A DNA stretch of 63,440 nucleotides, counting the filler, from Ministeria vibrans ATCC 50519 (Eukaryota > Protista > Filasterea): the NCBI GenBank assembly GCA_943704425.1. It is 5 parts of 5 records of this genome, joined end to end, with 100 filler letters (N's around TTAATTAATTAA, not from the genome) between each part and the next. Parts side by side here need not be neighbours in the genome. Positions count along the whole stretch, not along the records: positions 19,191 to 40,499 come from CALSCP010000556.1; 4 more parts are not named here. One strand, written 5' to 3'. This document shows positions 19,191 through 40,499 of this stretch, in pieces. Position 1 is the stretch's first letter, and each line of letters begins with the position of its first letter. The position numbers and the translations under genes were made by a program. A model generated the notes under the pieces. That model searched no databases. It saw nothing but the letters and a program-made list of their open reading frames with translations, and was not told the origin of the DNA.

Positions 19191-19274
<84 letters not shown>

Positions 19275-19504
19275 CTTTGTTTCTCTCTCTCTCTCTTTCC
19301 GTCTTATCGTTTGTTGTGCACATGCGGAAAGGGTCAATTGCCGCGACTCCCTCTCAAAAATCTGTCCATGATATCACACATTCAGTGACTATCCATCAAT
19401 GTCACTCCACTGACTCATTCACTCACTCACTCACTGCAATCAATATCCCTCGCCCTCAGTGCGCGACAATATCAAACGTATTTACTCTTTGATTCGTACA
19501 CTAG

Positions 19505-20129
19505 GCTGATATGGTGAAGCTGTGCGCGTATTTCATGTACGGAGTGTATGAGAAGAAATTCATCTATGTGGACCAGTGCAAGAGCCGACCCAATGCATAT
19601 GGATTCTCCTATGTGTACCGCAAGAGCCTTTACGATAAGGGTATGTGATTTGAGTGGATGATTGAGTTTTGTGTTATTGAATTTATTTGTGTGCGATATT
19701 TTGTGCACTAACTTTTTGAATGTAGGAGTGCGGTTCCAGGCGAAGTCGCTGATGGAAGACGATTTCTTCCTGAACCATGCTGAGCGCATTCTCAATGCAA
19801 AGATTGTTCGTATTCCGGAAGAGCGTGGAGACGCACTCAAAGTGGTACGTACTTCAACTCTAATGCAAAATATAGCCCTAATAACAACCCTAACCCTAAT
19901 GACAAAATATGACAATCCCATGACAAACTATGACAATCCTAATGACTATCCTAAAAACATTACTCACCAATGACAACCTACATCTTCTCAGGTGACTGGC
20001 ACCGGATGCACAGGAATGCCCCTCGAGCGTACTGGCGATGTCATCTACGATCAACTGCCCCAGTTTCTCAAGGGAACTCTCTACGGTTCGCTCGCGCACA
20101 TTGAACAATACCTTAAACGTCCCTATTGA
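19505..20129 (+). CDS. 3' exons of a probable GT-A/GT2-like glycosyltransferase (5' end missing)
   Basis: Three in-phase exons: ADMVKLCAYFMYGVYEKKF...AYGFSYVYRKSLYDKG / VRFQAKSLMEDDFF...ALKV / VTGTG...YLKRPY*. The GFSYVYR...RF....ED pattern resembles GT2 acceptor-side motifs. Confidence 0.5.
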
Positions 20130-20213
20130 AAAGACGCTCACAAACTTGAACTTAAATATAATTAAAACTATAACACACACTTTTTATATGAAAACATTAT
20201 TATATTATGATGA

Positions 20214-21259
20214 TTATTCCGTTCCGTCGAGCTCCAACAGTTTCTCTGTGAGAGTGCGCTTTGAAAAGTGGAACGAAGAAATGTACGTGAAAGCAGTTTC
20301 GGGGCCCAAGAGACGCGCACGAATTGCGTCGATGTCCTTTCCTTGAGCCTTCAGTGTGAGCGCACTATCGCGCAAACGCAAGAAATGGTCAAGGCGTGAC
20401 TGAAGCATGGCGCGTGCATTGTCGGTGATGCACCCGCGGTGCGCACAGTACATGGTGGTCCAGGGGAGCCCCAGAATGCGTCGCAGGGATTGAATATCGC
20501 GCCTGAGGTCCTCTTCTGGTCGCATAAACATGGGCTTTGCCGTTACGAAGAGGTCGGCAGTAAACATGGCGTCGAGTGCGGGTGCGTGCAGAGCGACCAT
20601 GTCCTCGCAGTGTCCCGGCGTGGCGTACGCTGTCAGAGTGACCTCCCGTGTCACCTCAATGGGCGTCTCAAGGGGCAGTGTCGCATTGGGACGGAATAAT
20701 CGCGGACGACCCCACACTACAAACAAACAAACACACACACACACACACACACACAGCACAATGCAAAGGGTGAGAACAAGCTCGTCGTGCAGCGTGTCGC
20801 GCACCAAGAGAGCGGTACCACTGGATCGGAAATCCCGTCTCAACCAGCGGAATCGTCAGACTGGGCGCCACAATCTCAATGTGTCTGGTGCGCTTGTGTC
20901 GTTGCAGGCGTGCACCGTTGCCGCTGTGATCTACGTGGGGGAGGGGTTTGAAGGCGGTGGAGTGAAAGACAAGGCTAGGGCGGCGCAGGAGCGGCGAGAG
21001 AGCAGTACCTTCGTGGTGATGGGTGAGGATTGCGCGCGTTACGCCGTGCTTGACAGCGTAATTCGCCAGTGGTTCCCACGCAATGCATGGTCCCACGTCA
21101 ATGAGAGTCTGGCCAATGCGATACACAAACTATGAGCAGAAAGACAACACATTTCACGTGAAACTTATGATTGTATGAACTTGCATCAATCATTACGACG
21201 CTCGTGTTGATCCTGCCCGCATATCGGCCCAGTCTCAAGGAGTCTACTAACTTGCTCAT
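20214..21259 (-). CDS. Metallo-beta-lactamase-fold hydrolase, 4 exons
   Basis: TLIDVGP, ILTHHHEDHSGN (HxHxDH across an intron), TPGHCED, FTADL and CAHRG. Confidence 0.9.
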
Positions 21260-21466
21260 AACAGTTCGATTGGTAGGAGAAGAACAGATTGTGAGATCAC
21301 AGTGCGTCAAAATTTATAATTCAATCAGTTCATACTTCATTCAGTTGGGACTTCTCACACAGATCACCTCAATTCACAATGAATTCACATTTTTCTCTTC
21401 ATGCTTCAAATCGGACTACTTTTAAGGTCGTCCATTACCAAGGCTAACTATCACGGCTCGAGACTC

Positions 21467-22770
21467 ATGTCGACGCGGTCAAAAGCGCAAACGTTCGTAC
21501 ACAAGCGACTCTCCAAAATAACGCAATGGACCTAATTCAATTATGATTCGTTCAGCGTCACCTCAAGCGACGGATGGAGCGTTGCGTTTGACCGACACGC
21601 GCCTACCAAGGCCGGTGCGCCCTCTGTTGCCTTTGCGCATGCGACGGGGTTCTGTCGTCAGGTGTGGGCGCCAGTCATTGAGGGTCTCACTCTCACTCAA
21701 CACGGCGAGATGGTCTCCTTCGATTTTCGGCTCCACGGCGACACAGGCATGCACCCAGAGCAGGTACGCCCCGCGGGAGCGATCCCGCGAGACACTTTCG
21801 TCTGATGCCCACGCGTCTTTGCAGAGTGATGCGCACACGCGTTTGTCCTGGTGGGACTTGACGCGAGACGTGAGTGCGGTTACGTCGCAGGTGGAGTCGC
21901 TCTCTCGCAAAATAGTGGGCGTTGGTCATTCCATGGGTGCGGCTGCACTAGTCATGACTGAAATCGAACATCCAGGGACATTCTCTGCACTTGTACTCGC
22001 TGAGCCAATCGTGTTTCCGCCACTTCTAGACGATCCGGTCAAGTCACCCGTAAACCCAATATCATTATTCATAACGATGCATTGCCTCTCAACGCACGCT
22101 TTTACACATTAGACTGCCGAAGTATTCCAAAAGCGGTCCCAACAACTTGCCAAGGGAGCACTGCACCGCCGCAGTACGTTTGAGTCGCTTGAGTCGTGTC
22201 GTACGCACCTCACTCGCTCATCGCCCCATCGCCCATCCATCTTCGCCCAATGGTCTCCTTCTGCCCTCAATGCATATCTCTCGGGCGGATTTCGTGTTAC
22301 TGAGGGTCCTCCGCCGGGTTTGCTTGAAATCAAATGTCGTCCCGAGTGGGAAAGTGCCGTTTACTCCATGGGCCATCACAATGCTTTTCAGCGGCTCAAC
22401 GAAATCAAATGTCCCGGTTCGTTCACATATTGAACGTCTGTGATCTCGCCTGACAACCCACTATTTTTGTAGTATTTCTACTAACAGGCGAAACATCCGA
22501 CATTTACCCAAACGCATTCACTGAGGTAGCAACGCAAACCCCTAACCCTAGCCCTACCAATCATTCACCCCCATTTCTCCTCTCTGTCTCTGTCTCTCTC
22601 TCTTTCTCGTCTCACAGGTTCTCGTCAAGCAGTTCTCGTGCCCCATCACCCACCACACAGTCCCCAATAGCACTCACTTTCTCCCAATGGAACAGCCATG
22701 GGCCATTGCTCGCTCTGTCTCAACCGCTCTCGCTCTCTCTTCAAAACCAGCTGCTCACCCCAAACTGTAA
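21467..22770 (+). CDS. Alpha/beta hydrolase with C-terminal PTS1-like tripeptide (PKL), 6 exons
   Basis: [25 protein letters not shown] nucleophile elbow, [13 protein letters not shown] (catalytic His); ends AAHPKL*. Confidence 0.88.
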
Positions 22771-22869
22771 AATCACAATGAAAATAAAATAATAATAAAA
22801 TAATTATAATAAATTATTATTAATTTTTTTTGTTATTATTATTACGTTTTATATTCTTTATAAGTATAA

Positions 22870-25800
22870 TTAAAAACATTTCCGTTCAACTGACTCAATC
22901 AGATTCACAGTCTCGCTCACGCTTATTCCACCCTAAAAAGAAAGCACACATTCTCTCAATACGTTTCGTCTCGTCTCTCTCAAACTCTCCCTCTCTCTCA
23001 AACTCTCTCTCTCCCACTGGTTTCTTCTTTCGTTCTTACGCTTTTAATGGAACGGACCAAATGATTCTGTTGCTCAACGGACAGAACAGAGACAAAGCGC
23101 GACACAATCAGTCCATCACACACTCCCTTGCGCACATGCGAGTGTGCTCGATATGCCTAAAAGCAACATGACAATCATTATGAGTCTGTGTTTGTCAGTC
23201 GCTGTCTCGTGTACTGGAATGGAAGCGCCGGTGAGTGAGGGACAGAGACCCAACTCAACCATTTGATGTTCAATGGCAGTAAGCGAGTGATACTCGGAAG
23301 GAGTGATGGGTGCAAGGACTGTGAGTGCTCCACTGGCAGACGCAACAAGGAGCACACGCGACGACGACGAAGATACTTGCGACTCTGATACAAAGCCAGA
23401 CACAGCGGAGTGGGTGAACTGTACAAGGCGCAGTCGTGTGCATTGACCCTGATGCACATCAAAAGCGCACACCTGCTCAAGCCAGTTAAAGGCACCGCCT
23501 GTCTTCACACGCTCCACTGCCAGTGCGCCCGTGTGGTCCACACCATACAGCACAAATGACCCTGTTGCACTGTCCACCGTCGCAAGGCACTCCTTCATCA
23601 CCCGCGCTCGTGGACTCTCCATCGCATACGTCAATGTTACTTTCCCACCCACTCCTTCTTCTCCTCCATCCAGCAGCAGTTCCGCTCGCACTGCAAACAG
23701 TCCCGTGTGCAAATCACTTACGCCAATCAGTGCCGATTCAGGACACACACTCACACGCAATATCATACTTGTGCGTTGGCGGTACGCTGTATCATACACA
23801 AACTACACAATCGAACAATCCAGTGGTAAGAAGACATAAGATGAATGTTTGTCTAATAATACAACGATAATAAAAATAACGATAATAGCAGTAATATAAT
23901 AACGCGACATTTAACATCATTATCTTTTTTTCATCATTACCTTCTGACCGTCCCAATGCAGCACTTGAACCTCTGGACCAGCGCCAACAATCAAGAGAGA
24001 GTCGCCAAATACTTCGATGGTCCGCACACTGCTCTCTACCAAGATTGGCTGCCACTCGCCCACCCACTTCAGCTCATCGCCCCCCTGTGGGTTGTGATAC
24101 GCAACCAGCAATCCCTGAGCCAACCTTGGATCGGTTTTGGAATGCTCAAAGCCGATAAAGATCATATCGCGATGGGCTGTGATGGCAAGAGCACGAAGTC
24201 GCGCGGCAACCTGCCGAGCGGGCAGGGGAGCTCGCGCAACCACGTCTCCCGTCAGCGCATCGACAAGCAAAAGTTCGCGCGACGAGGTGACGGCAAGGCG
24301 ATTTCCTTGCGAAATGTGAGTGATTCGAGAAAAGCTATCGCCTGTCAGCAGCACGTCGAGGGAAAGGCGGCGATGCTCTGCCAGCGCGACAATGTACAGC
24401 TGGTCGGTGGTCATAAAAATCAGTCCAGTGCCCTGCGTGGTATGTGGCAAAAGAGAGGAGCTGAAGGGAACCGCAAGACTGAGCGCACGTGTGAACGCAA
24501 CTGGCATGATCGACGGCAAACCATATAGGGAGCGCACAATGTGTGCACGTTCGCACAGCGCAATGAGTGTCTCGGGCGTGTCCTCGTTGCGGCTGCTGTT
24601 GTTGGCGGCAACAGTCGACGCATTGACACGCAAAAGTCGCACAGGTGTGGCACCAAGCGTGCGAGTGTGCGGTTCGGATGCGACTGTCGGACAACCGCCC
24701 GATGTCGGCGACCACGTCCAGTCAAAGCGCGCCAGACGACCGTCACGCAAACCCACATAGAGAAGGGTGTCAGCACCCTGCAGACGACGAGCAATGCGCA
24801 CCGATTCGGGAACACAATGGCCGCGATCCTGCCGCATTGCGGGCAACTGAATGGGTGCGGCGACGCTCTCCAGTGTGGACAACGCCAAAATGTGAACCTC
24901 CGATGTATATGTGCCCACCAAGACAATGCCGTGCGCTGAGTCCACATCAACACACGACGGCTCAACAATCCCCAGGGCACGAGCACACAGCTCGGAAATG
25001 AAGCCGTCCTCGCACGACACACGAAGCACAATCAAACGGTTTCCAGGTGTCACCGAGAGTACGACGATATCGTCGTGGCCGTCAACGACACTAATGGAGG
25101 ATGCACTAGTACCGTCAGGACACCACTCGTGCATGCATGACGGATGAAGTGGCAGAGCCGACAGCAGATCGACTGACGAGGCGGGAAGACGCACGGTGCG
25201 CACACGCTGAGCTGTCACTTGGATCAGGATGTTGCCCTGCGGTGTGCTCATGGCCAAAAGGGTCGTTTCACTGCCACACAGACCCACATCGTCCGCTAAG
25301 ATGGTCTCAAAGTTGACACTATCCGTCGTTTCATCGTGCACAAGCGCAAAGGCACACGAAAGACTCTGCAAGAAGGTAACAAGCACCAGTTCGTGATCGG
25401 GCACTTGAGACGAGCGCGCGAGTGCCCACACCCCCGACACCCCTTCATAGTCAGCATCAGACTCGTGAATCACCGAAGCAGCTACGCCATTGGTGACACG
25501 GCGCACACTGCCACAGTCCACCGCAGCACCCGCCGTCACACTCACATCATACACCGGCCGTGGCACAGTGCCATCAGTATCATCATCAGCACCACCAAGT
25601 CCACAACACAAAAACGCCACGTCCGACGTGTCTCCAGGCATTCTCGCCACAGCACAGTCCAGAATGGGTCCCCAGTTTTCAATCACTTCAATAGGCCGCA
25701 CACTCAGATCAGGAGACAACTAAACAACGTGCATAAGCTTCGTACCATGCTATCAATGTTTGAGACGTACCGTCAGCAAAAGAGTCACTCCGTCTCCTCT

Positions 25801-26783
25801 GAGACTTGGCAGCACAACCACACACGTGTCGTCAGAACTACCGGGCTGTGTTGATGGCAAGGTGACAGTGGGGATGACCGTCAAGTGTGCTGCAGCAATG
25901 TGTTGGCCCAATGACATGGCACTGAGTGTGTCGACCTGAACGGTCACGAGAAAGAGTTCGGCGCAACTGTCAAGTGTGAGAAGCCGCGTGCAAGGCATTT
26001 GCTCGCTTGTGTTGGCGGGTAGAGCGCACCACGACAGACACGGTCTAAAGTATATGAATAAGAGATATTCAAACAAATCAAAAATAATATATAAATATGA
26101 ACCGTTGTTGAGGGAGGAGAAACGGCTGCGGCCACTCAAGGGACTGTTCGAGGTGAAGAGGAACAGAGATGATGAAGACACGACCGTGCTCGGAAACGAG
26201 CAGAAACGACTCGGAAAGGTGAAGGAGAGGCTCAATGTGAATGTAGAGTGGCGTGCTGTTACTATTGCGGTTGTCGGGGGCGTCACAGGAAGGAATGTCG
26301 TAGGAGAGACGTGAGATTGAGAGGAGGGGGGCTGTGTGAGACGACTGGAGACGGGAAACAATGATGGTGGCGCAGTTGCTTGTTGAATTCCAGGCAAGAA
26401 CAACAGAAAGAGCAGCCGAGAGAAATGCTGTGGAAATGATGGTGGTGCGTGAAGGGAGTCGTGGTGACTCGAGCAACTGCAAAAACAAAACAAAAACCCC
26501 CAAATATTACGGAATCACTATGACTGAAGTTGAATGGGTTACGTGACAAACGCCGTTGGGAGCGGTGGGGGAAACAGAAAATATGGAAAGAGATTCGTTA
26601 AAGCCGGCTGCAAGGATAGATTGGCCACTAAAACAGAGAAGACGAAGGTCAAAGATTAACTTTATTATTATTAGTATTATTAGTATTATTAGTATTATTA
26701 GTAGTATTATTTTAATTATCATTATTATTATTATTATTCGTATTATTAGTATTATCATTATTATTATTAGTAGTATTATTTTA

Positions 26784-26838
<55 letters not shown>

Positions 26839-26850
26839 GTATTATTAGTA

Positions 26851-26885
<35 letters not shown>

Positions 26886-27532
26886 GTAGTAGGGTATAAT
26901 GTGATGCACATACGTTGAATCGACATTGAGATGGTGACAGGTCTCGTTGTAAGTGAAGGGTAGGGAGGGAAAGAGAGATGAGGGTGCAATTTGAGAAATG
27001 GATTGGAAGGAATGCGGGTGGGAGGGCACAATGCGGAGGAGGGAGACAAAGCCCGAGTCGGACAGGAGGGCAATCCAGTCTGCAACACACAATATGAGAT
27101 GAGTCAGTTGCGCGACTGGTTGGCATTGGTGTACCCTGGTCCTGGTCGCTGCGTGGCACAGCCTTGAGCGCATGGCAGGTGCCAAAGACAGGGCTCTCGC
27201 AGAGGGGCAGGAGAGCGTGTGTGGCGGGTGAGCAAAGGAACAGTTCGAGCGAGGAGGCCTGCGCAAACAACACCAACGCATGAGAGCCAGAGAGCGGCTC
27301 GTCAGCCCACCACATGCGTGTCTGGTACCTTGGCCACAACTAGGTCATATGCACGGAGCGAGCGAAAGCGTCCAGCACAGGAGCAGCTGATGAGAGAGCT
27401 GAGACACACAGTCGACACTGTCAGAAGACATTCTCCTCCTCTCTTCACACTTCAGACGACGGCGTACCTTTTCAGCACTTCCTGCGCATAGAAGTGCATG
27501 TCGATATTGGGCAGCTCATCAGGTTCGACCAT
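22870..27532 (-). CDS. DDB1/SAP130(RSE1)/CPSF160-family triple beta-propeller protein, divergent paralog, ~11 exons
   Basis: GRFRSLRAYDLVVAKASSLEL...ESPVFGT, IALLSDSG, IENWGPILDC, LCCG..., GSVRRVTNG, VPESV, LYVGLRDGRL and C-terminal GVCDGLIVSRF. Confidence 0.85.
26661..26883. repeat. Imperfect (TAT/TAG)n trinucleotide microsatellite in an intron
   Basis: Visible run; it produces the spurious poly-I/poly-N ORFs. Confidence 0.95.
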
Positions 27533-27632
27533 TGCAGAAATGACCAAGTGATGACCAAATACCAATAGAGTGAAATATTATGAAATAAATCTGATCGAGA
27601 TTTAAACTTATTTATCTCTATTTTTTTGTTGA

Positions 27633-29432
27633 ATGTCTACAAACAAGGGAAAGGGGCCCGCGTCGAAGGAACAGCTCACGCCGGAGGCTGCTGCGGCAGC
27701 GCTGATGGATGGCGAAGAGGACGAAGATGCGATTGACCGAATGTTCGACGCTTACCGTCGAGGCGAGATTCCTCGCGTTCCCGGCTACATTCGCGACGAC
27801 CACATCGAGGAGGACCTTGAGAACACCCCGCTGTTTATGTCTCGAGCGCCTCAAGGCGACGTGGATCCTGAGAAGGTACAGAATTTGCTCCGTTTCTGTT
27901 TTTTTGACACGTTCGCGTGTTGTGTGTTTTTGCACTGTTTGCGCAGTCACCGGCGATTGCTGCTCTCCAGAGCATTATTGACGAAGAACAGACACCCGAG
28001 GAGGCTGCCGCTTACTTCAAGGACGGCGGCAACGAAAAGTTTCGACAGGGTGGCGAAGAGAATATGAAGGGAGCGATTCGCATGTACTCAGACGGACTGT
28101 ACAAGGCGCGCGACGACTGCAGGGACCGCTCGCTCGTGCTCATGCTCTATGCGAACCGCGCTGCGGCCCATCTGATGCTGAAGAATCACCGACAGACACT
28201 GCTGGACTGCGCGTCCGCCTGGAAGGAACACGAGCGCATTGTGGCCGAGGCAAAGACAGCAGCAACAGCAACATCGACATCGGCGACATCCTCAACCGAC
28301 GACAGCGACAGCAGTACGGCTGCTCCGTCCATTAAGACTTCAGGTGCTATTATCAAGGCATGTGTACGTGCGTGCAAGGCATCGTCGGCGCTGGGTCGAC
28401 CTCAAGAGGGCGTCGAGTGGTGTGATAAGGCGCTGACCGTCGACCCAGCTCACGAGACGGTGCGCGAACACCGCGCACTGGCAGTCAAGGCCGAAGCGGA
28501 GCGTCTCAAGCGCTACCGCAAGCAACAACGCGAACGGAGCAAAATGCTTAATGCTGATAAGGCCCTCATCGAAGCGATTGAATCACGCGGAATTCACATG
28601 AGACAAGTAAGAAATGCCGTACAGTGCGCGTTCAACTGTCCATTCTCTCATTGCTCTTTCTATCGCTTTCCTTCTTCTTTTATCACTTTGTTTCCTCTCC
28701 GTCATTTCTATTACTTTTGTTTTTCTCTCTCTCTTATTTCCCTACCATTTTAATTATTATTGATAATTTCTCTTCCTCTTCTTTTCTCCTTCTCTCTCTC
28801 TTGTAGCATCCTGAACGTGACACGTCGATTCCCACGTCGATTCTGGAGAATCCCAGTGGCCATCGACTGCACTTGAAGGCGTCTGAGTCGACGGGTGAGC
28901 TCACACTCTGTGTGCCTGTCATGTTTCTGTATCCTGAATTTCACCAGACCGACTTCATTGAGGAGTTTTCCGAACATGCAACGTTCCAAGACCATCTGTC
29001 AGTCATGTTTGCACCATCAGAGGTCATTGCATGGAACACAGGCGCGACCGTTTACCGCGCGGACAACCTCGAAGTGTACTTTGAGCAGGACAGTGATATG
29101 TCCGGGGGCACAGTGGCCCGTCAGGGGTCGAATCTTTGCCGCGTTAATCGCTCACGCTCACTCTTGCAGGTTCTTCAGGTACGCAACTGATGAGACAAAA
29201 AAAAAAGAGCTGTATATGATCATAGATAGAGAGGGAGAGAGAGAGAGAGAGAGAGAGAAGGGAGAGCGTAAGACGAATGTGTCACAGTGAGTCAACGAAA
29301 AGTCATTTTAATGTGCTTCTGTTGTCTTTGTAGGACCCTCGTTTCTGCATTGTGGGTGGCATTGCTGTGTTCTTTCTTGTCGCTGCCGATTCGCAGTTCA
29401 AAGAGTCCTTTCTCAAATCACACAGAATATAA
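27633..29432 (+). CDS. TTC4: TTC4/CNS1 TPR co-chaperone, 4 exons
   Basis: LENTPLFM, AALQSII, FKDGGNEKF and LYANRAAAHLMLKNHR (TPR); VPVMFLYPEFHQTDFIEEF (wheel domain). Confidence 0.93.
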
Positions 29433-29510
29433 AATCACTTTTTTTTATCCACCATAATTGTACAAATTATTATTACTATTATCAACTACGATCGTACAAT
29501 AACAAGCAAA

Positions 29511-32500
29511 CTAAAAACTTTGAGTGTGGGCCTTGATGACTTTGAGGCGCCGCTCCACCTCCTGCGCAGTGGGTCGCGCCCATGGGTCACCCGTCCAACA
29601 GTCACTCATAAGCGTACAATAAGTCTGCGACCANNNNNNNNNNNNNNNNNNNNNNNNNNNNNNNNNNNNNNNNNNNNNNNNNNNNNNNNNNNNNNNNNNN
29701 NNNNNNNNNNNNNNNNNNNNNNNNNNNNNNNAGTGTGGGCCTTGATGACTTTGAGGCGCCGCTCCACCTCCTGCGCAGTGGGTCGCGCCCATGGGTCACC
29801 CGTCCAACAGTCACTCATAAGCGTACAATAAGTCTGCGACCACGACGGGTCAATGGGTGGTCGTACCCCTCGCGAAACAGACTCGATAATCTCCCAGTCA
29901 AATGCAATGTCGTTGAACGGTAGTTGGCGTGCCATAATCTCCCACAGAATGATCCCCAGCGCATACACATCCGCACTCAGCGAGTAGTTTGTGCCCGCAG
30001 ACACTTCAGGAGCACGCCACAGCAAAGTTCCCGTCTTGGCTGTCAGCACTCGCGGAGCCACACTCGACCGAATGCTCTCCCGACTCGCATCCGTCGTCTG
30101 TCGACTACTCCTCTCAGATTCCTCATTCACCAGATCAATGGGCGGTACATACGATCGCCCAATGTCCGTAGACGTAAATGCGTGGGGTTTGAGTCCGTCA
30201 ATCAGTCGAGCAGTCCTAAAATAGTCAAGGAACGTGAGCAGACTCAACCGAATGACACAAAGCTCCCTACCCAAAATCAGACACTTTCACAACCCAATCA
30301 GCGTCCACCAACAGATTCCCACTCTTCAAATCACGATGGATCCCTGGTGGATCCATTGCGTGCAGAAACGCCACACCACTGCTTGCATCACTCGCAAACG
30401 ACATTTTGCGTCCCAAACTCAATTCAATTGATGTGTCCCCCAACACATCCAACAGGCTCCCGCGCTCCATAAACTACACAGCAGATCATATGGTTGAGAA
30501 TTCACGTATACACATACATTATAATTATAATAATAATAAAAGTAGTAGAATTATATATACACATACATAAATTCACACGCACACGCACACACATACATAC
30601 ACACTCGCTCTCTGTCTTCCTATCCTTTTCTAATCCTTTACCTCTGTAACTAGATAGGGCGCCCCCGACGCAGTATACCCCGCTCCGTAAAAAAACACAA
30701 TGTGCGGTCCGCGAATCGATCGCAGCAGTTTGATTTCGCCTGCAAAGTCATCGACACTCTCCTTGTCCGTCTCCATCACTGCCTCACGCAGGTACTTCAC
30801 AGCAACCGTCTTGCCTACCCACTTGGCCAGCCACACCTTTCCAAATGCTCCGCTCGCAACTTCTTTGGTCCGCGTCAGGTCTGACTCGCTAATGTGCCAT
30901 GCGCGCTCTGCCTCGTCCCGCTCACGAGCCGCGACGTCTCTCTCCCGCTCCGCATCCACCAGATTGGCTTCGGCGTCGCCGAGCAGTCGAGCGTACAGTG
31001 AGGAGCGCTCACGATTGCGCTTGGAGCGACGCACAAGAAACAAAAACACGGCAATGGTCAGGATGGACATCAGAATGGCAAAGCCCACCAGTGCGCCCCA
31101 CGGAAAGTTACAATTGTCGCGGGACAAATAGCCAAAGTGACACGAACACGAGACGAGGCCTTGAGCAGCGGCAATCACAACACATGAGCCGTGAGCGTGG
31201 CACGTGGAGGGACGGCAGACGAGACAGTCATTGATAGACTGGGATCCAATGGAGCGAGTATAGGTGTCGCCAGGACATTTCGAACACACAGTCATGCCTA
31301 AAGATCAGAAGAAACAAAAAATGTCCCTCACACCCTTTCTTTTTTCTCTCCTTCAGGCTCACCTGCTGCTGACGAAAAGGATCCCAAGGGACACGACTGA
31401 CACGGGTCGTATCCAAACGCTTCAGAAAACTCACCGGCGTTGCATCCAAGCTCAAGGAACATTGTGACAGACGGACTCGCGCCCAGTCCACCATACACAC
31501 CACTAAAACAAAAATAATAATGACCCTTTTAGTAGACATGCACTATTCCTAAATTTATTATTAGATATTGTGCTCGTACAAGCCAGTGCGTCGCCCAGCA
31601 GAGTTGTTTTGTGAGGGAATAATAGGCATTTGTGCGCCTGCTCCCGACGAGATAGAAATAGGATAGCCAGCGCGGGTGTTGAGCAGCGACCAGTCGTTGT
31701 TGACGAGTGAGTAGACGTACAGGTCCGAGTCGCGTTCCGAGAGCAGGTCTTCGCCACCAAACATTACTATGGCCTGACCAATTGACGCCATTTGTGGGTA
31801 AAGACGCGACGGAGCGGGTCCACTCACCGGAGTGATTTCGCTCCAGTAGTTCTCGAGCGCATCGTACTTCCACATGTCGCCATAGGGCAAGCGCGTGATG
31901 GCATCAAACCCACCAAAGATGATCAGGTAGCGCTCGAGCAACACCTGGCCGTTGGGTAGAGAGCGAGCGGGCGGGTAGGTTCCATTGGTCTGCGGGATGG
32001 TCCACTCAAGCGTCGCCAAATCGAGCAGTTGCAACGAGACAAAGGAGTGCTGTTGCGAGGCAATGAGACCCCCAAAAAAGATGAGCGAGCCATAAGTGGA
32101 CGTTGACGATGAAATGGCACGCACAAGACCACCGACGGGGAGTGCAACAGCAATGGGTGAGGGAGACGACGGTGGTGCAAGCACTTCGGTCCAGTAATTG
32201 CGGTGGAGCGAGTAGATGAATGTGCGGTTGCTGGGCCCTTCAAACTGTGTCCATCCTCCAAAGAGCACTGTTGTCTGCTCACCCGCAAACATCTTCACGT
32301 TGGCCGTGAGCATAATGTACGATTCAAGTGCGGGTGGCTTTGTGCCTGACGGATAGAGCTGGCGCCATACAAGGTTGTTCACATTGAGAAGCCAGAGGTC
32401 ACTGAAGAAGACCCACTCGACAAGGCCAATTCCCCCATACATTAGAAAGACAATCTGGTCGCCCGTTGCATTGCCTGTGAGCGTCCCCACACTCACATCA

Positions 32501-32648
32501 AGTGTAGACAGCATGTAATCAGGCAGTGCAAAGGAGGAGGTCGCAGACAGTTGCAGCTGAGCCATCTGCATGAACTGGCGCGGCGAAGGAAAACTCGGCG
32601 CAGACCGGTCTTCCCACAAGCCCTGAGACAGGTCAAGAAGGTATACCT

Positions 32649-32688
<40 letters not shown>

Positions 32689-32719
32689 GAGACAGAGAGA
32701 CAGAGAGACAGAGAGAGAC

Positions 32720-32752
<33 letters not shown>

Positions 32753-32777
32753 GAGAGAGACAGAGAGACAGAGAGAC

Positions 32778-32810
<33 letters not shown>

Positions 32811-32848
32811 GAGAGAGACAGAGAGAGACAGAGAGAGAGAGAGAGAGC

Positions 32849-32888
<40 letters not shown>

Positions 32889-34331
32889 AAGTGATAGAGA
32901 GAGAGAGTTAATGATGAAAAAGAAGAATGAGACGCAAAACAGAAGGTGCAATCGTGAAAAGGTCATTATGAATTGAGAGGCGTTTTACGTCGGAAACGTC
33001 GTCGATGTGAGCATACTGTAGACGACCGCCAAACATGACAAGATAATTGTAGGGCTTCCATGTGCCCACGACAAAGCCAATGCGGGCAATGGGGAGAGAG
33101 GAGAGCTGTTGGTAGACAACGTTTGCGAAGGGGTGGTTGAGGCGCGTCGACATGGCGATGTTGTTTGTGTAGACAAACGGAGCGACCGTCGTGATGTTGA
33201 TCTCGTAGACAATCAAATCCAGAAGGTCGTAGGTAGTCACGGCAAAGACATTTGCGGAGCACACGCCGTCTGGTAGCTGCGTTGAATCAAAGACGGACGG
33301 ACCAAGATTGCGAAAGATGCTCTGAGAGGAGATGGACGCCGTGTTGTTGTTGACGAGCGTCCACTGAGCCGTCACGTTGGTTGAGGAGATGGTGACAGGT
33401 TCGAGAAATTCGAGAACCCACAGGTCGTAGAGCCAGAGGTAGTTGACATTGGAGAAGGAAGAGGTGCCGCCGACCATGACCATCTGGGAGTCGGTGCACA
33501 GCATGCCGACCGAGGCGAGGAGACGACCGCGCGGCACAATTCCGTCATGCGCAATGACAGGACGAAATACACCGCGCAACGGATTCGTTTTCGATCCAAG
33601 GGAGCCTTGCAGGGTGAGAACCCATGTGTCATTAAGGACACGTGAAGGAAGCAGCGAGTAGCCGCGCAACGACGACTGAGAGCCGCCGAAGACGATCGCC
33701 ATCATATGGTCTGACACGGAAGTGTACGCTGGCGCAGCACGGCGCGAAGGCCAGGTTACACCAATGACGTCGTCTTCGTTGGGGCCAAGAAAGTGCCACG
33801 AGTTGTTGTTGTGGTTGTACAGCCAAGCGTCGTTGAGAAGCGTCTGAAACGACGTATCATAAGAAAATTTAAGAATAGACGTACAGTACCAACAGCGACA
33901 TGACTGTCATGTTTCAGTTTGTCGTTAATTCTTACCTGATTTGCCACACTGAGTCCTCCGGTGGCGCCGGCAAAGACGACAAAATAGGTGTGCAAGCCAA
34001 CGGCCATCTGAAGACCGGCATGGGAATAGCGGGCGACGGGCGCAGGGCCGGGGAGGGGGCGGTGGACACTCCACGTCCGCTGCGTCAAATCCATCGCCCA
34101 CACGTCGTTGGACTCGACGATGGCCGTGTTGTTTTCGCCGCTGAACACGTACAGGTGGTTGCCAATGACGGTGCCCGCTGCAAAGTCGACGGGACGAGGC
34201 GAAAACGCGCGAGTGTCCAACGACTGCCACAAGTCCACATCAAACGCAGGCGTGCCCGGCGCTGCTGATCCCTGTGCATGCCGGGCGCCCAGGGTCAAGC
34301 AGCCCAAGCTTGCAAGCAAGGCAAGTAGCAT
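29511..34331 (-). CDS. Receptor kinase 1: signal peptide, kelch-like repeats, Cys-rich GCC2/GCC3-type repeats, EGF, TM, TKL (Raf-like) kinase
   Basis: Repeated FGG...ND.W kelch blades; CQSCPLGSF/CSKCPGDTY; CHAHGSC...CSCHFGY (EGF); TM GALVGFAILMSILTIAVFLFLV; kinase motifs SGAFGKV, VAVK, HRDLKSGN, DFG, GTLLWRAPE, DVYALG. Confidence 0.93.
32651..32907. repeat. (GA)n/(GACA) compound microsatellite in an intron of receptor kinase 1
   Basis: Visible run. Confidence 0.95.
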
Positions 34332-34628
34332 GGGGGGCCAAAATTGAATGAATGAAACTGTGATAAAACTAATAATTTAACTCTTAGTTAAGACTGATCG
34401 AATTGTTCGGTTTTTTCATGAATTTGAATTATGGTCGTTTAAAAAACACCGGCTACTAGTTAGCCACTAATAGGAGATGAATGTCCAGCGCCAAATACAT
34501 TGAAAAGAATGAGAAAAAGCGTGACAGGTGTGACCAAGCAAATGTCCTCAACGACTCACCAAACACGCGATACAATAATAAAATATTATTACTCTTGTTC
34601 TGTTACAATGTATCATAATTATTTGTTC

Positions 34629-37600
34629 TCAGTAACTCTGCGTGTGGGCCTTGATGACTTTGAGGCGCCGCTCCACCTCCTGCGCAGTGGGTCGCGCCCA
34701 TGGGTCACCCGTCCAACAGTCACTCATAAGCGTACAATAAGTCTGCGACCACGACGGGTCAATGGGTGGTCGTACCCCCCGCGAAACAGACTTGACAATC
34801 TCCCAGTCAAATGCAATGTCGTTGAACGGTAGTTGGCGTGCCATAATCTCCCACAGAATGATCCCCAGCGCATACACATCCGCACTCAGCGAGTAGTTTG
34901 TGCCCGCAGACACTTCAGGAGCACGCCACAGCAAAGTTCCCGTCTTGGCTGTCAGCACTCGCGGAGCCACACTCGACCGAATGCTCTCCCGACTCGCATC
35001 CGTCGTCTGTCGACTACTCCTCTCAGATTCCTCATTCACCAGATCAATGGGCGGTACATACGATCGCCCAATGTCCGTAGACGTAAATGCGTGGGGTTTG
35101 AGTCCGTCAATCAGTCGAGCAGTCCTAAAATAGTCAAGGAACGTGAGTAGACTCAACCGAATGACACAAAGCTCCCTACCCGAAATCAGACACTTTCACA
35201 ACCCAATCAGCGTCCACCAACAGATTCCCACTCTTCAAATCACGATGGATCCCTGGTGGATCCATTGCGTGCAGAAACGCCACACCACTGCTTGCATCAC
35301 TCGCAAACGACATTTTGCGTCCCAAACTCAATTCAATCGATGTGTCCCCCAACACATCCAACAGGCTCCCGCGCTCCATAAACTACACAGCAGATCATAT
35401 GGTTGAGAATTCACGTATACACATACATTATATAATAATAATAATAATAATAATAATACTAGAATTATATATACATACATAATTCACACGCACACGCACA
35501 CACATACATACACACTCGCTCTCTGTCTTCCTATCCTTTTCTAATCCTTTACCTCTGTAACTAGATAGGGCGCCCCCGACGCAGTATACCCCGCTCCGTA
35601 AAAAAACACAATGTGCGGTCCGCGAATCGATCGCAGCAGTTTGATTTCGCCTGCAAAGTCATCGACACTCTCCTTGTCCGTCTCCATCACTGCCTCACGC
35701 AGGTACTTCACAGCAACCGTCTTGCCTACCCACTTAGCCAGCCACACCTTTCCAAATGCTCCGCTCGCAACTTCTTTGGTCCGCGTCAGGTCTGACTCGC
35801 TAATGTGCCATGCGCGCTCTGCCTCGTCCCGCTCACGAGCCGCGACGTCTCTCTCCCGCTCCGCATCCACCAGATTGGCTTCGGCGTCGCCCAAAAGCCT
35901 CTCATAGAGCGTACTGCTTTCGGCAAGTCGTCGACTGCGCCGGAAGAAGAACAGAAGCAGCGCACCACCAACAGTCGCAGAGAGCAACGAACCGAGGACA
36001 AAACCAATCCATGGAAACGAGCAATTGTCGTTGGAAAGGTAGCCAAATTCACAGTGACACGAGGCAATACCACTGCTGCCCGCGGCAATGCTACAATAAC
36101 CGTGTCCATTGCAAGTGTTGGGACGGCACACACTACAATCGCGCTTGGCCGACGTGCCAGTACCCACCGTCCATGAGTCGCCAGGGCACCGTTGGCACGA
36201 GAAGTCGCCGACATTCGCATAGGTGCCGACGGGGCATTCGACACACGGATAGTAGCCAAACGAAGGAGAGGCAGAGCCGGGTCCGCAGTTGGGAAAAATA
36301 ACATTGAGCGTCGACGGACTTGCACCCAGACCGCCGTACGTCGTGAAGAAGGACGCACTGAGATTGGCAAGTGCGGGAGGCAGATCCGACTTGGGCAAGT
36401 GAAAATATTTCAATGCATCGGCAAGCGTGGCGCCTGTGGAAGTACCCACACCCGCTGAAATGGAGACAGTCGTGCCAGAGAGGGTCGGTAACTGTGCAAG
36501 GCGATTGAGATCAAGATCGTACACTAACATCCTGGCGGTGCGCTCCGAGTAGGAATTCTCACCGCCAAAGATAATCAGCGACTGTCCCACCACTGCCGTT
36601 TGCGGGTACATAATAGGTGTCAATGCGGCTCCCGTTGGATGCTTCTGCTCCCATATTCCCGTCCATGCGTCAAACACCCAAAAATCGGCGAGAATCTCCT
36701 TGAAATTGATGCCACCAACAACAATGAGGTAGCGCTCGTGCATCACACCGCCGTATGCGAGAGTGCGCGGACCAGGACGCACAGTCGAGCGCACCACGGC
36801 TGGCGTCCACTTCATCGTGCCCAAATTGAACATGTACAGATCGCCATAGTACGAAAGGAACTGAGTGCTTCCTCCAAAGATGACCACACACCCGTAAGAT
36901 GACGAGGGGAGGTCGAGGGGACCGCCGCGCACAAGACCGCCCACTGTGCCCGCTGAGCCAGGTGGAGTCGCACCCGAGTTGGAGATGGAAAACCAGCGAT
37001 CTTGCGTCAGCGAGTACACATACGTACCGTTGTTGGCACCGTTCAGATTGGACCAACCGCCAAAAAGTAAAAACTAAAGTAGAAAAAAAAAATTAAAAAT
37101 GAGTACGCGAGTGCATACTGGATTCATCTTGGATACGGTTGTGTCGTCGGGCAAAAGAGACGTTTGAGCAGCAACAGCAAAGGAGGTCTCCAGGTAAGGG
37201 GGTGCGTCGCCCTGAGGTGTCATCTTTCGCCACACAACTCCATCGTCATTGACCATCCACAGATCATTGAAGAAGCGCCAACCCGTCAGACTCATTCCGC
37301 CATAAATGAGCCTAAAAAAAAACACGCAACACACGATCATTATAATTAATTGAAAGGGTGACGTCGATCTAATTTCGTACCAAACGCGCTGGGGAGAGCC
37401 AAGCGTGCCACCAATGGTGGTGACAGAGGGATGGGGGATCATGTAGGCGGGGACCGCGTACTTGGAGTCGGGAGCGAGCGGGAGTTGGACAATGCTGGTA
37501 AATTGGCGAGCGGGCGGGTTGGGATCAGGCGTAATGTTGGTCCAGACGCTTGTATTGGCCGTGAACGAGAACAGCTTTACGTGTGTCAGACAACATGAAT

Positions 37601-38948
37601 GAGAGGGAAACGATTTTCATACCTCGGGTGAGTCTTCAATGTGGGCGTACTGGAGGCGACCGCCGTAGATGATGATCTTGTTGGAGGGGAAGTGGTAGCC
37701 CGGAACATAGCCAACGCGTGCAATGGGTTGCAGCGAAAACTGTAATTGTGAAGGGGTGAGGTACGAGGGGGGTTTAAGGGAACCAGAGAGGAGCGACGGC
37801 TCAATGGCTACGTCGAAGACAAGTTGGTCAAGTTCGTTGAACTGAGACAGTCCAAAGACGCGAAGATGGCACTCGCTGGCGGGTGAGCCGTCGACAGCGG
37901 CCGTGAGACGCGCACAAAAAAGCCGCGTTCCGAGGGTCTTGAAGAAGGGCGGTTCGAGTGCCTCGTTCACGGCGGGGTTGAGCAGGACCCATTCACCGCG
38001 CGGCAAGTCGGACTGCTGCTCGCGAAAGTTGAGCACCCACATGTCAAAGAGAAAGCCGCTGACGTTGCTCACAACAATCGTGTCGGATTCACCTGCGAGC
38101 AGGACAAGCGATTGCGGTCCGTAGAGGCCCACTGAAGCGAAAATGCGCGGAGTTGGCCCGGCCGTGGTGTCAAGTGCGACACGACGGAAACGCGCAGAGA
38201 ATGTCCCCTGCGCATCCTGGTCAGCAGACATTACCCAAGTGTCGTTGAAGAACACTGTGCCGTTGTGTGGCCATTGCGCAAATGGGGTGAGGTTCCCCGA
38301 GTAGTGCGGGGTGTACTTGGAGCCTCCAAAGAACATCATCTGCGTGCGATTCGACACGACCGTGCTCATGGCACTGACGCGAGCCGACGGCCAAGTGTCC
38401 TCTGTCTCGTTTGCCATGGGACCCAGCAGATGCCACGTGTTGTTTTCCGCGTCGTAGAGCCAGGCATCGTCAAGAACTCGCTAGATCAGACACACAGAAA
38501 GAAAGAAGGTTGAGCTTGTCGCAGTGCTATGCACAAGTCAGCTTACGCTCGTGTTTGACGCACTGCCCTCTGTCGCACCCCCAAATAGGACTAAATACTC
38601 CTGGCCCTTGATGACTACGACTTCGCACGCCTGTCCGAACCGCGGTTCGGGCGCTAGAGCCCCCGGAAAGCGCACCGTCCACGATTCGGCGACCAAGTCA
38701 AACACCCAAGTGACGTTCGTCTGGACGTATGCCGTGTTGTTTTGACCGCTGAAGACGTAAAGCGAGTTGCCGATGACGCCGCCACTTGAGAAGTCGGTGG
38801 GATTGGGGCCGTAGAACGTTGTGGGGATGATGTTCCAAATGTTTGAAAAGGGAATGTTGTCGCCAGTGGGAAACTCTGGTAAAGACGACGCACCAAAGAC
38901 CATCTGCACCAGCGTAATGATGGTGATGGTTGAGAGGCACGCCCTCAT
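34629..38948 (-). CDS. Receptor kinase 2, tandem paralog of receptor kinase 1 with the same architecture
   Basis: Signal peptide MRACLSTITIITL, kelch blades, CVECPVGTY/CQRCPGDSW, EGF CNGHGYC, TM, and a kinase nearly identical to copy 1. Confidence 0.93.
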
Positions 38949-39035
38949 TGAGGAGAAGCGAATGTAACTGGAATTTGCCTTTGCGAAGATCAATTCTAAG
39001 TTCGAATTACACTTTACAAATACACTTTTTGTAAA

Positions 39036-39697
39036 ATGATGCGCCTTGTCATTGTGACGCTTTCTCTTCTCTCACTGGCAGCCTCTGTGTCGCCAGTGTT
39101 TCCATCGGAGTGGCAGGGAGAGTTCGTTGAGACCAATGTGTACCCGCACGCAAATTATTCCGTCGACGGCGCAATGTACTATTCATGGCCGCAAAGGGCA
39201 CAGCGGATCAACCGCGCCTCGTCACTGTACAGCCCGCTGTGCTCGCGCTACCACAAAGTCGACACGCCGTGCCACCAGTACTATCTGAACTCGTCGCTGG
39301 TGTTCGTGTGGCCCGCCGAGCAGCGGTGCTGTCGCGGCTGCTCTGATCACTGTGGACCGCTGACGCCGACCTGGCTCGACTCTTCCACGTACACCGGGGT
39401 TCACCAGGTCTCTGTTAATGGTACCACAACAGCGTGTAATTCGTTCCAGGTCAGTCAGGACGTGAAAGAACCCGCAAATTAAGTGATCGTGTGTGTTAGG
39501 TCAAGGGCGCCTCGTCTTCGGACTACTGGGCCGACAGCGTCGACGGCGGAAAGCCTTGCCAACTTGGAGATGGCGGGGGGGCCGAAGGATCGTCGTGGTG
39601 GCTCAACTTTGTTCCCTCGACAGTGCGTGTCGCTGCTGTTGACCCCCTCCATTTCGTTCTGCCTTCGTACTGCACCAATGCTGGTCGTTGCCTCTAA
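39036..39697 (+). CDS. Secreted Cys-containing protein, ependymin-related/LolA-fold-like, 2 exons
   Basis: Signal peptide, PVFPSEW, GAMYYSW, RCC...CGPLTPTWL, STYTG...CNSF and terminal FVLPSYC; intron 39450-39499. Confidence 0.6.
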
Positions 39698-40119
39698 CCA
39701 CGACTGTCAAGTGGGAAATGTCAGCCGCGAGGCAACCGTTACCCAATACCCCTCATACGACATACATGAAGTGTTTGAGTGTTTCTTTTCCGTCCTATTC
39801 GTTTTTGATCAAGCGAGAGAGAAAGGAGTTTGGTGCTCTGACTGTTGGCAGTGCGACAGATGCGATTTCAATTTGCAAGCAGGATAAATAATATTAGAAT
39901 CAACTAAATGCATATGAGCGTATGAGGGGCAATCAGAGACCTAACCGGAGCCTGATTGGCGAGTGTTCGAAATGGAAGTGAGAATGGACTGTGATTACAG
40001 ATTAAGTAGTCACTTACTCACTTTCAAGTTTCAACTCTTTTTCTTAAACTTTCATCTGACCTGTGATCAGTTGTCTCTCCCATTGAACTCGTGTAGTGCC
40101 GCCTCTTGCCCCGGCTCCC

Positions 40120-40288
40120 ATGTCCAACATCTACTACAAATTCAAGAATGAGACGAGTGCAGAAACGATCAAATTCGATGGTGTGGGTCTCACCGTTGCC
40201 GAGCTGAAGCGCGAGATTGTCCAGCGTCACAAGCTGCAGCATGTTCAGAATGAGGACTTGCGCATCACCAACTCTCAAACAAAGGAAG
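40120..40288 (+). CDS. RBBP6: RBBP6/MPE1 DWNN ubiquitin-like domain, exon 1 (scaffold ends)
   Basis: MSNIYYKFKN...IKFDGVGLTVAELKREI...DLRITNSQTKEE followed by a GTAAC donor. Confidence 0.9.
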
Positions 40289-40468
40289 GTAACAAAACGA
40301 AAGAAAAAACCGATTGAGAACGTTTTTTTTTTCTCTTTTTCGCTTTCTGTTCTCTCGACGAACAACGTCCTTTCTTCCTGCTTAGCTCCATTGAATCGGG
40401 ACCATTTTCATTGTGTTCTCCTCTGTGCCGTGTATGGCCGTCATGTCTTGCTATCATTTCATTTCATT

Positions 40469-40499
<31 letters not shown>

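Follow-up and report, generated by a model that had tools for sequence, protein, structure and literature searches.

Near-identical kinase halves in an old tandem pair of Kelch/TKL receptor-like kinase genes of Ministeria vibrans: probable interlocus gene conversion

Two neighbouring genes of Ministeria vibrans ATCC 50519 (assembly GCA_943704425.1), further referred to as gene A and gene B, encode putative receptor-like kinases with a nearly identical intracellular half and strongly diverged extracellular halves. They lie in the window, a stretch of 63,440 nucleotides joined from five parts of this genome, and all positions below count along the window. The piece analysed spans positions 19,191–40,499 (21 kb) and is taken from one assembly. 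Both genes are located on the minus strand, B upstream of A, with 297 nt between them (Table 1).

Splice sites were placed using open frames, the homology between the A and B proteins, and tblastn matches of homologs. All 12 introns are of the GT-AG type and 48–342 nt long, and both models are free of internal stops. Database and family searches were performed exon by exon; the spliced models were compared by script. Two introns in the ectodomain part are common to A and B (after GATGGLSVANQ/GATEGSASNTS and after AHIDDVSD/AHIEDSPE), two are private to A (amino acid positions 772.7 and 819.3), and two to B (484.7 and 543). The kinase part is interrupted by two introns, K1 and K2, which occupy the same positions in both genes and have nearly identical sequences; K1 contains an ATA/CA microsatellite, the site of indels between A and B. 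Intron 2 of gene A (32647–32988) consists almost wholly of (TC)n/(TCTG)n microsatellite, and the corresponding B intron is just 48 nt long. Candidate inverted repeats formed by this intron with 19191–19304 are no structure and were rejected: the piece just opens with simple sequence, (GA)n, complementary to that of the intron.

The single run of N in the 21-kb piece abuts the 3′ edge of the near-identical tract in gene A. The contig ends on either side of it, 29523–29633 and 29732–29842, are the same at 111 of 111 nt; the ends therefore overlap, and the gap was created by scaffolding, with no sequence missing. When the ends are merged, with 29732 continuing at 29522 on the minus strand, the frame is preserved and the A protein ends with KAHTQSF, followed by TAG at 29511. 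Gene B, which is read without any gap, ends with KAHTQSY and TGA at 34629, and the merged gene A reproduces its structure. A gap in this position makes it clear that the assembler had trouble with this tract.

Judged by their domains and motifs, A and B look like type I receptor-like Ser/Thr kinases of the TKL group, both apparently functional. The order of elements is the same in the two proteins: a putative signal peptide, Kelch blades, an ephrin-receptor-like Cys-rich and EGF-like region, a transmembrane (TM) segment, a charged juxtamembrane segment, and a TKL kinase. PF24681, the Pfam Kelch propeller, matches exon 3 of A at E 7e-33 and exon 5 of B at E 3e-20, weaker matches occur in exons 1 and 2 of both genes, and these matches settle the predicted fold of the ectodomain as Kelch. 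Approximately 11–12 blades per protein were counted by eye, which suggests two propellers per ectodomain. Ephrin_rec_like was matched with E-values 1e-7 in B and 3e-4 in A, and an EGF-like Cys pattern follows. The topology of a receptor can be read from the models: hydrophobic N-termini, one hydrophobic stretch followed by RRS(K/R)R, and the kinase at the C-terminus.

In the three kinase exons tested, PF07714 (PK_Tyr_Ser-Thr) outscores PF00069 (Pkinase) each time, and the catalytic motifs VAVK, HRDLKSGN, DFG and APE are intact in both spliced models. The solved kinases closest to the C-lobe exon, the one exon compared, are TAK1/MAP3K7 (E 9e-19) and then MLK1, DLK and ZAK; no IRAK or plant receptor-like kinase (RLK) appears among the 60 best solved-structure matches of this exon. 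Profile, motifs and the nearest characterised kinases, the latter from one exon, point to the TKL group. Between DFG and the P+1 loop both proteins carry a Ser/Arg/Glu-rich insert of approximately 55 amino acids (30050–30214 in A and 34960–35123 in B, minus strand), which makes the activation segment unusually long and has no alignable counterpart in TAK1 or in most homologs.

The only BLASTN alignment between the two genes is a tract of approximately 1.25 kb, with 98.56% identity over 1253 columns, 10 mismatches and 5 gap openings. A column-by-column list resolves these into seven isolated point differences (29870, 29884, 29887, 30239, 30273, 30429 and 30825), while the remaining indels and substitutions all fall within 30520–30569, the K1 microsatellite. 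Three of the seven points lie in an 18-nt cluster, and a cluster as tight as this arises in 1.7% of random placements. It could be a trace of patchy mismatch (heteroduplex) repair or of a later multi-nucleotide mutation.

Both edges of the tract are abrupt. In the sense of the genes, the 5′ edge is the GGC codon of RLLG/DAEANLV (the slash marks the boundary); from 30981 in A and 35892 in B outward about 60% of sites differ at once, and the LL codons just outside are CTG CTC in one gene versus CTT TTG in the other. At the 3′ edge, five codons before the stop, ACT CAA AGT TTT TAG of A faces ACG CAG AGT TAC TGA of B. Beyond the stop codons the 3′ flanks are unrelated. Neither target-site duplications nor extra sequence were seen at the junctions.

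The divergence of the two halves was measured on the aligned codons. In the 892 codons upstream of the tract the proportion of synonymous differences (pS) is 0.716, which is saturated (Jukes–Cantor synonymous divergence, dS, about 2.3), the proportion of non-synonymous differences (pN) is 0.44, and amino acid identity is 38%. In the 40 codons directly upstream of the boundary pS equals 0.87. The 339 codons of the tract contain four synonymous and two non-synonymous differences (dS 0.016). The step from saturation to this value falls within one codon. The longest identical run in the aligned coding sequences is 330 nt versus a maximum of 38 nt in 10,000 column shuffles, and therefore chance is excluded.

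The same discrepancy is seen when the pair is compared with its relatives. We aligned 47 full-length proteins with MAFFT in fast mode and computed a maximum-likelihood tree from 41 ectodomains (715 columns, quick LG+G4 search); given the many long branches, only the grouping of A with B and the path lengths were used. A and B are sisters (SH-like approximate likelihood ratio support, SH-aLRT, 100) separated by a path of 1.51 substitutions per site. The Salpingoeca rosetta protein P0009 and the Hartaetosiga protein P0016 are separated by a similar ectodomain path, 1.48, and their kinases are 61% identical, compared to 99.3% for A and B; no other pair among the 820 family pairs exceeds 61%. On these comparisons the histories of the ectodomain and kinase halves disagree. 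Saturated ectodomains with differing intron sets support the view of A and B as an old paralog pair.

The initial annotation, made by eye, proved accurate in each descriptive detail that could be checked. It had described near-identity over approximately 1.25 kb with about seven point changes and intronic slippage, abrupt edges with different codons at HTQSF and HTQSY, unrelated 3′ flanks, and ectodomain halves that align at the protein level only and differ in intron positions; all of this was borne out. Its central claim, that the signalling half of an old pair was recently homogenised, is supported by the contrast of ectodomain pS with tract dS and by the near-identical introns. Two of the checks that it had proposed gave results. 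The course of dS along the genes, whose uniformity would have spoken against the claim, turned out to be a step, and in the ectodomain tree the two proteins are distant sisters despite their kinases.

We consider it very probable that this pattern is best explained by interlocus gene conversion in an old tandem pair, affecting the kinase half only. According to this scenario, A and B would have been born by an old tandem duplication, after which the sensor halves diverged to saturation and gained or lost different introns, whereas the cytoplasmic halves were recently homogenised by non-reciprocal homologous recombination. The sharp edges of the tract would be the places where usable homology ends. 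Initiation of gene conversion requires near-identical DNA, and a length of 1.25 kb is ordinary for both mitotic and meiotic conversion tracts. Because of this requirement, and because the rest of the genes is at the level of random DNA identity, the kinase halves probably never diverged far and would have been homogenised repeatedly, that is, by concerted evolution. The two proteins presumably share the same downstream output. Near-identity that includes silent and non-coding sites, enclosed in homologous and much older flanks, is the signature of a conversion tract, and it is observed here.

Several points weigh against this explanation. Divergence does not pass through intermediate values at the edges of the tract, and the recurrence of conversion is deduced rather than observed. 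The data are a single assembly without reads, and the only gap of the piece sits right where copy A ends on its 3′ side. Both the allotment of the seven variants between the copies and the joining of the left contig to A depend on the scaffolder. An outgroup would be required to fix the direction and date of the event.

The gap brings up the possibility that the assembly is at fault, so that one near-identical kinase, with allelic or error variants, was placed behind both ectodomains, possibly in place of a diverged true second kinase. Unmerged overlapping contig ends of 111 nt next to the edge of a repeat are typical of repeat-induced breaks, and the difference-free stretches within the tract (137–351 nt) cannot be phased by short k-mers. 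However, both copies sit on the uninterrupted contig 29732–40499 along with both 5′ junctions, at each of which the frame is kept inside one exon, and contig sequence also runs through both 3′ junctions. The seven point differences and the microsatellite lengths mean that the assembler built two distinct sequences. At its first base (29732, A) the right contig fits the flank specific to gene A and not that of gene B (C), and a truly diverged second kinase would assemble easily. We regard such an artefact as quite unlikely; the existence of two copies is more certain than the assignment of variants to them.

The same identity could have been produced by a non-homologous event, in which the 3′ half of one gene was recently duplicated, by template switching or segmental duplication, and the duplicate replaced the 3′ half of an unrelated or long-diverged neighbour or was fused to that half. 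Razor-sharp edges and flanks at random-level DNA identity would fit, and kinases as diverged as the rest of the gene could not have started homologous recombination. Yet both edges fall in register within a conserved peptide (LLG/DAE at one end, AHT/QS plus F or Y and the stop at the other), so a non-homologous event would need to hit the homologous codon twice, and the junctions are clean. Outside both edges the proteins are homologous in register with different codons; therefore the recipient already had a homologous kinase. The initial annotation had left the choice between gene conversion and module swapping. Because the edges are in register, the stop has the same position, and both the adjacent, co-oriented genes and the ordinary size of the tract are typical of conversion, conversion is favoured, and the swap appears unlikely. 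That the duplicates are uniformly old and purifying selection alone has kept the kinase half identical is next to impossible. The kinase is indeed the most constrained part, and family pairs generally have higher identity in the kinase than in the ectodomain; however, silent sites and two introns as identical as replacement sites refute this, and comparable pairs retain at most 61% kinase identity. Alleles or haplotigs were rejected given ectodomains 38% identical and different introns, retroposition given the introns kept in both copies, and a mobile cassette given flanks homologous in register and the lack of terminal repeats.

Relatives were sought by an exhaustive HMMER search of a library of 1.84 billion representatives with B exon 5 (Kelch, Cys-rich region, TM and the start of the kinase) as the query. 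It yielded 3568 matches, 50 of them below 1e-30, and the best were proteins of 1100–1400 amino acids in the expected register, none of them more than 47% identical to the query; no protein in this library reached 50% identity. Most of the top matches are from choanoflagellates (Salpingoeca urceolata, S. punica, S. macrocollata, S. kvevrii, S. infusionum, S. rosetta, Hartaetosiga, Diaphanoeca and Barroeca), joined by one protein of Ancoracysta twista and several metagenome/SRA fragments. The tblastn matches of exons extend over the Kelch part, the Cys-rich region, TM and the kinase. The choanoflagellate Kelch/Ephrin_rec_like/TM/TKL proteins belong to the same length class (approximately 1100–1400 amino acids) and have the same Pfam domain order as A and B, but are just 26–42% identical to them. 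One of these, S. rosetta P0009 (XP_004995715.1), is named "TKL/DICTY4/DRK protein kinase" in its source and contains Kelch propellers, Ephrin_rec_like and a kinase at a single-copy locus. Choanoflagellate TKL proteins of this kind were drawn as "Eph-like", sharing part of the Eph architecture (PMC6993872). Hence the architecture is already known, though functionally uncharacterised. Another Kelch-TKL family cluster bears the source name "N-acetylneuraminic acid mutarotase", evidently from its Kelch part.

We found no report in the literature of a homogenised tandem pair among the choanoflagellate relatives. Tandem or homogenised pairs were sought at two places, the locus of S. rosetta and a metagenome contig of 12 kb, and both proved single-copy; a metagenome scan with the kinase C-lobe exon gave one distant locus only (36% identity over 39 residues). 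The metagenome contig JGI 3300038657 (L003:6721-10608) contains an intronless Kelch-TKL receptor gene of 1295 amino acids beside a rhamnosidase-like gene.

Other known systems resemble the pair in part. DRK is an unstudied receptor-kinase family of the TKL group in the Dictyostelium kinome (Goldberg et al. 2006, PMC1420674). Like A and B, its members have a signal peptide, a single TM and a C-terminal TKL kinase, that is, they are Ser/Thr-type receptor kinases outside animals and plants. Their ectodomains, however, carry the Dictyostelium-specific "drk" domain or TIG instead of Kelch, and A and B are tied to DRK solely through the source-given name of P0009. Metazoan Eph receptors also have Ephrin_rec_like beside the membrane, one TM and, in the cytoplasm, a kinase with the TK/TKL fold. 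In contrast to the HRDLAARN loop of tyrosine kinases, A and B have HRDLKSGN of the Ser/Thr/TKL type, their N-terminal part consists of Kelch propellers, and Pfam searches of their exons gave no matches to Ephrin_lbd, fn3 or SAM; they do not qualify as Eph receptors.

The closest likeness in evolutionary behaviour is found in plants. The tandem OAK cluster of receptor-like kinases in Arabidopsis contains an identical 2.7-kb block from the start codon to the first 60 bp of the kinase, which its authors read as recent gene conversion (PMC3136440), and GENECONV detected gene conversion among tandem CRK genes (PMC6368629). OAK and the A/B pair share the tandem arrangement of receptor kinases, an identical block on the kilobase scale and a diverged remainder. 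The homogenised half of OAK is the ectodomain, the mirror image of A and B, and OAK belongs to the RLK/Pelle kinases of other organisms. The likeness of A and B to plant RLKs is one of functional analogy only.

The neighbours of the pair in 19191–29500 and 39036–40499 are ordinary eukaryotic genes, listed by their apparent family in Table 1. A long non-coding (ATT)n/(ATTAGT)n microsatellite lies between neighbouring genes at 26626–26934.

Table 1. Coordinates of the two receptor-like kinase genes, the near-identical tract and the neighbouring genes.
Feature	Positions	Strand	Evidence or details
Gene A, putative receptor-like TKL kinase, 1270 aa, 7 exons	29511–34331	−	Spliced model, Pfam by exon, tblastn of homologs
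Gene A exons	34331–33936, 33843–32989, 32646–31580, 31502–31363, 31297–30642, 30473–30271, 30215–29732 + 29522–29511	−	Overlap merged in the last exon
Gene B, putative paralogous receptor-like TKL kinase, 1282 aa, 7 exons	34629–38948	−	Splice sites, intact ORF, Pfam, tblastn
Gene B exons	38948–38547, 38480–37623, 37574–37381, 37311–37137, 37073–35553, 35382–35180, 35124–34629	−	
Near-identical tract, copy A	29733–30980	−	Juxtamembrane from GDAEANLV, whole kinase domain, both kinase introns
Near-identical tract, copy B	34642–35891	−	BLASTN, column list, codon comparison
5′ junction of the tract			Junction sequence lies upstream of GGCGACGCCGAAGCC...
5′ flank in A, TM end + RRSKR...SSLYARLL	30981–31040	−	B 35892–35951, RRSRR...STLYERLL; protein-level homology only, codons differ
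3′ flank in A, (T)QSF + TAG	29511–29523	−	B (T)QSY + TGA at 34629–34641, other codons
Point-difference cluster, 3 of 7	29870–29887	−	Two residues changed: WEIIES (A) vs WEIVKS (B)
Kinase intron K1 of A, 168 nt, GTAAAG...TGTAG	30474–30641	−	B equivalent 35383–35552, 170 nt
Kinase intron K2 of A, 55 nt, GTAGGG...TTTTAG	30216–30270	−	B equivalent 35125–35179; one difference (30239)
Spurious scaffold gap	29634–29731	.	Contig-end overlap 111/111 nt; merged frame; copy B continuous at the equivalent place
Metallo-beta-lactamase-fold open reading frame (ORF)	20214–20843	−	
Alpha/beta hydrolase	21543–22112	+	
RSE1/DDB1/CPSF1-type second propeller	23920–25719	−	
TTC4/Cns1-like TPR + Wheel gene	27633–29190	+	
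Small secreted-looking ORF	39036–39482	+	
DWNN/RBBP6-like start	40096–40317	+	

The initial annotation went further and proposed a family with variable sensors and a constant output as the best candidate for an undescribed system. The family is conjectural: there are two genes only, with no third copy found by tblastn in the 21-kb piece. The label undescribed does not apply: the architecture is annotated in choanoflagellates, and partial conversion is known from the plant clusters cited above. The A/B case is a real, tidy and ordinary event of evolution, and the protein family in which it took place is known but unstudied; it involves no new mechanism or protein family. It is rather doubtful that many receptor genes with unrelated or deeply diverged ectodomains share one continually homogenised kinase cassette throughout the genome of this protist; if they did, a unicellular relative of animals would have many sensors feeding one co-evolving output module.

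The pair offers a clean and well-bounded example of what is probably domain-restricted concerted evolution in receptor kinases outside plants and animals, and it would be of use in marking that ectopic recombination is ongoing in this genome. The pair also calls for caution in annotation and phylogenetics: a tree of the kinase domain would date the duplication as very recent, whereas the ectodomains show that it is old.

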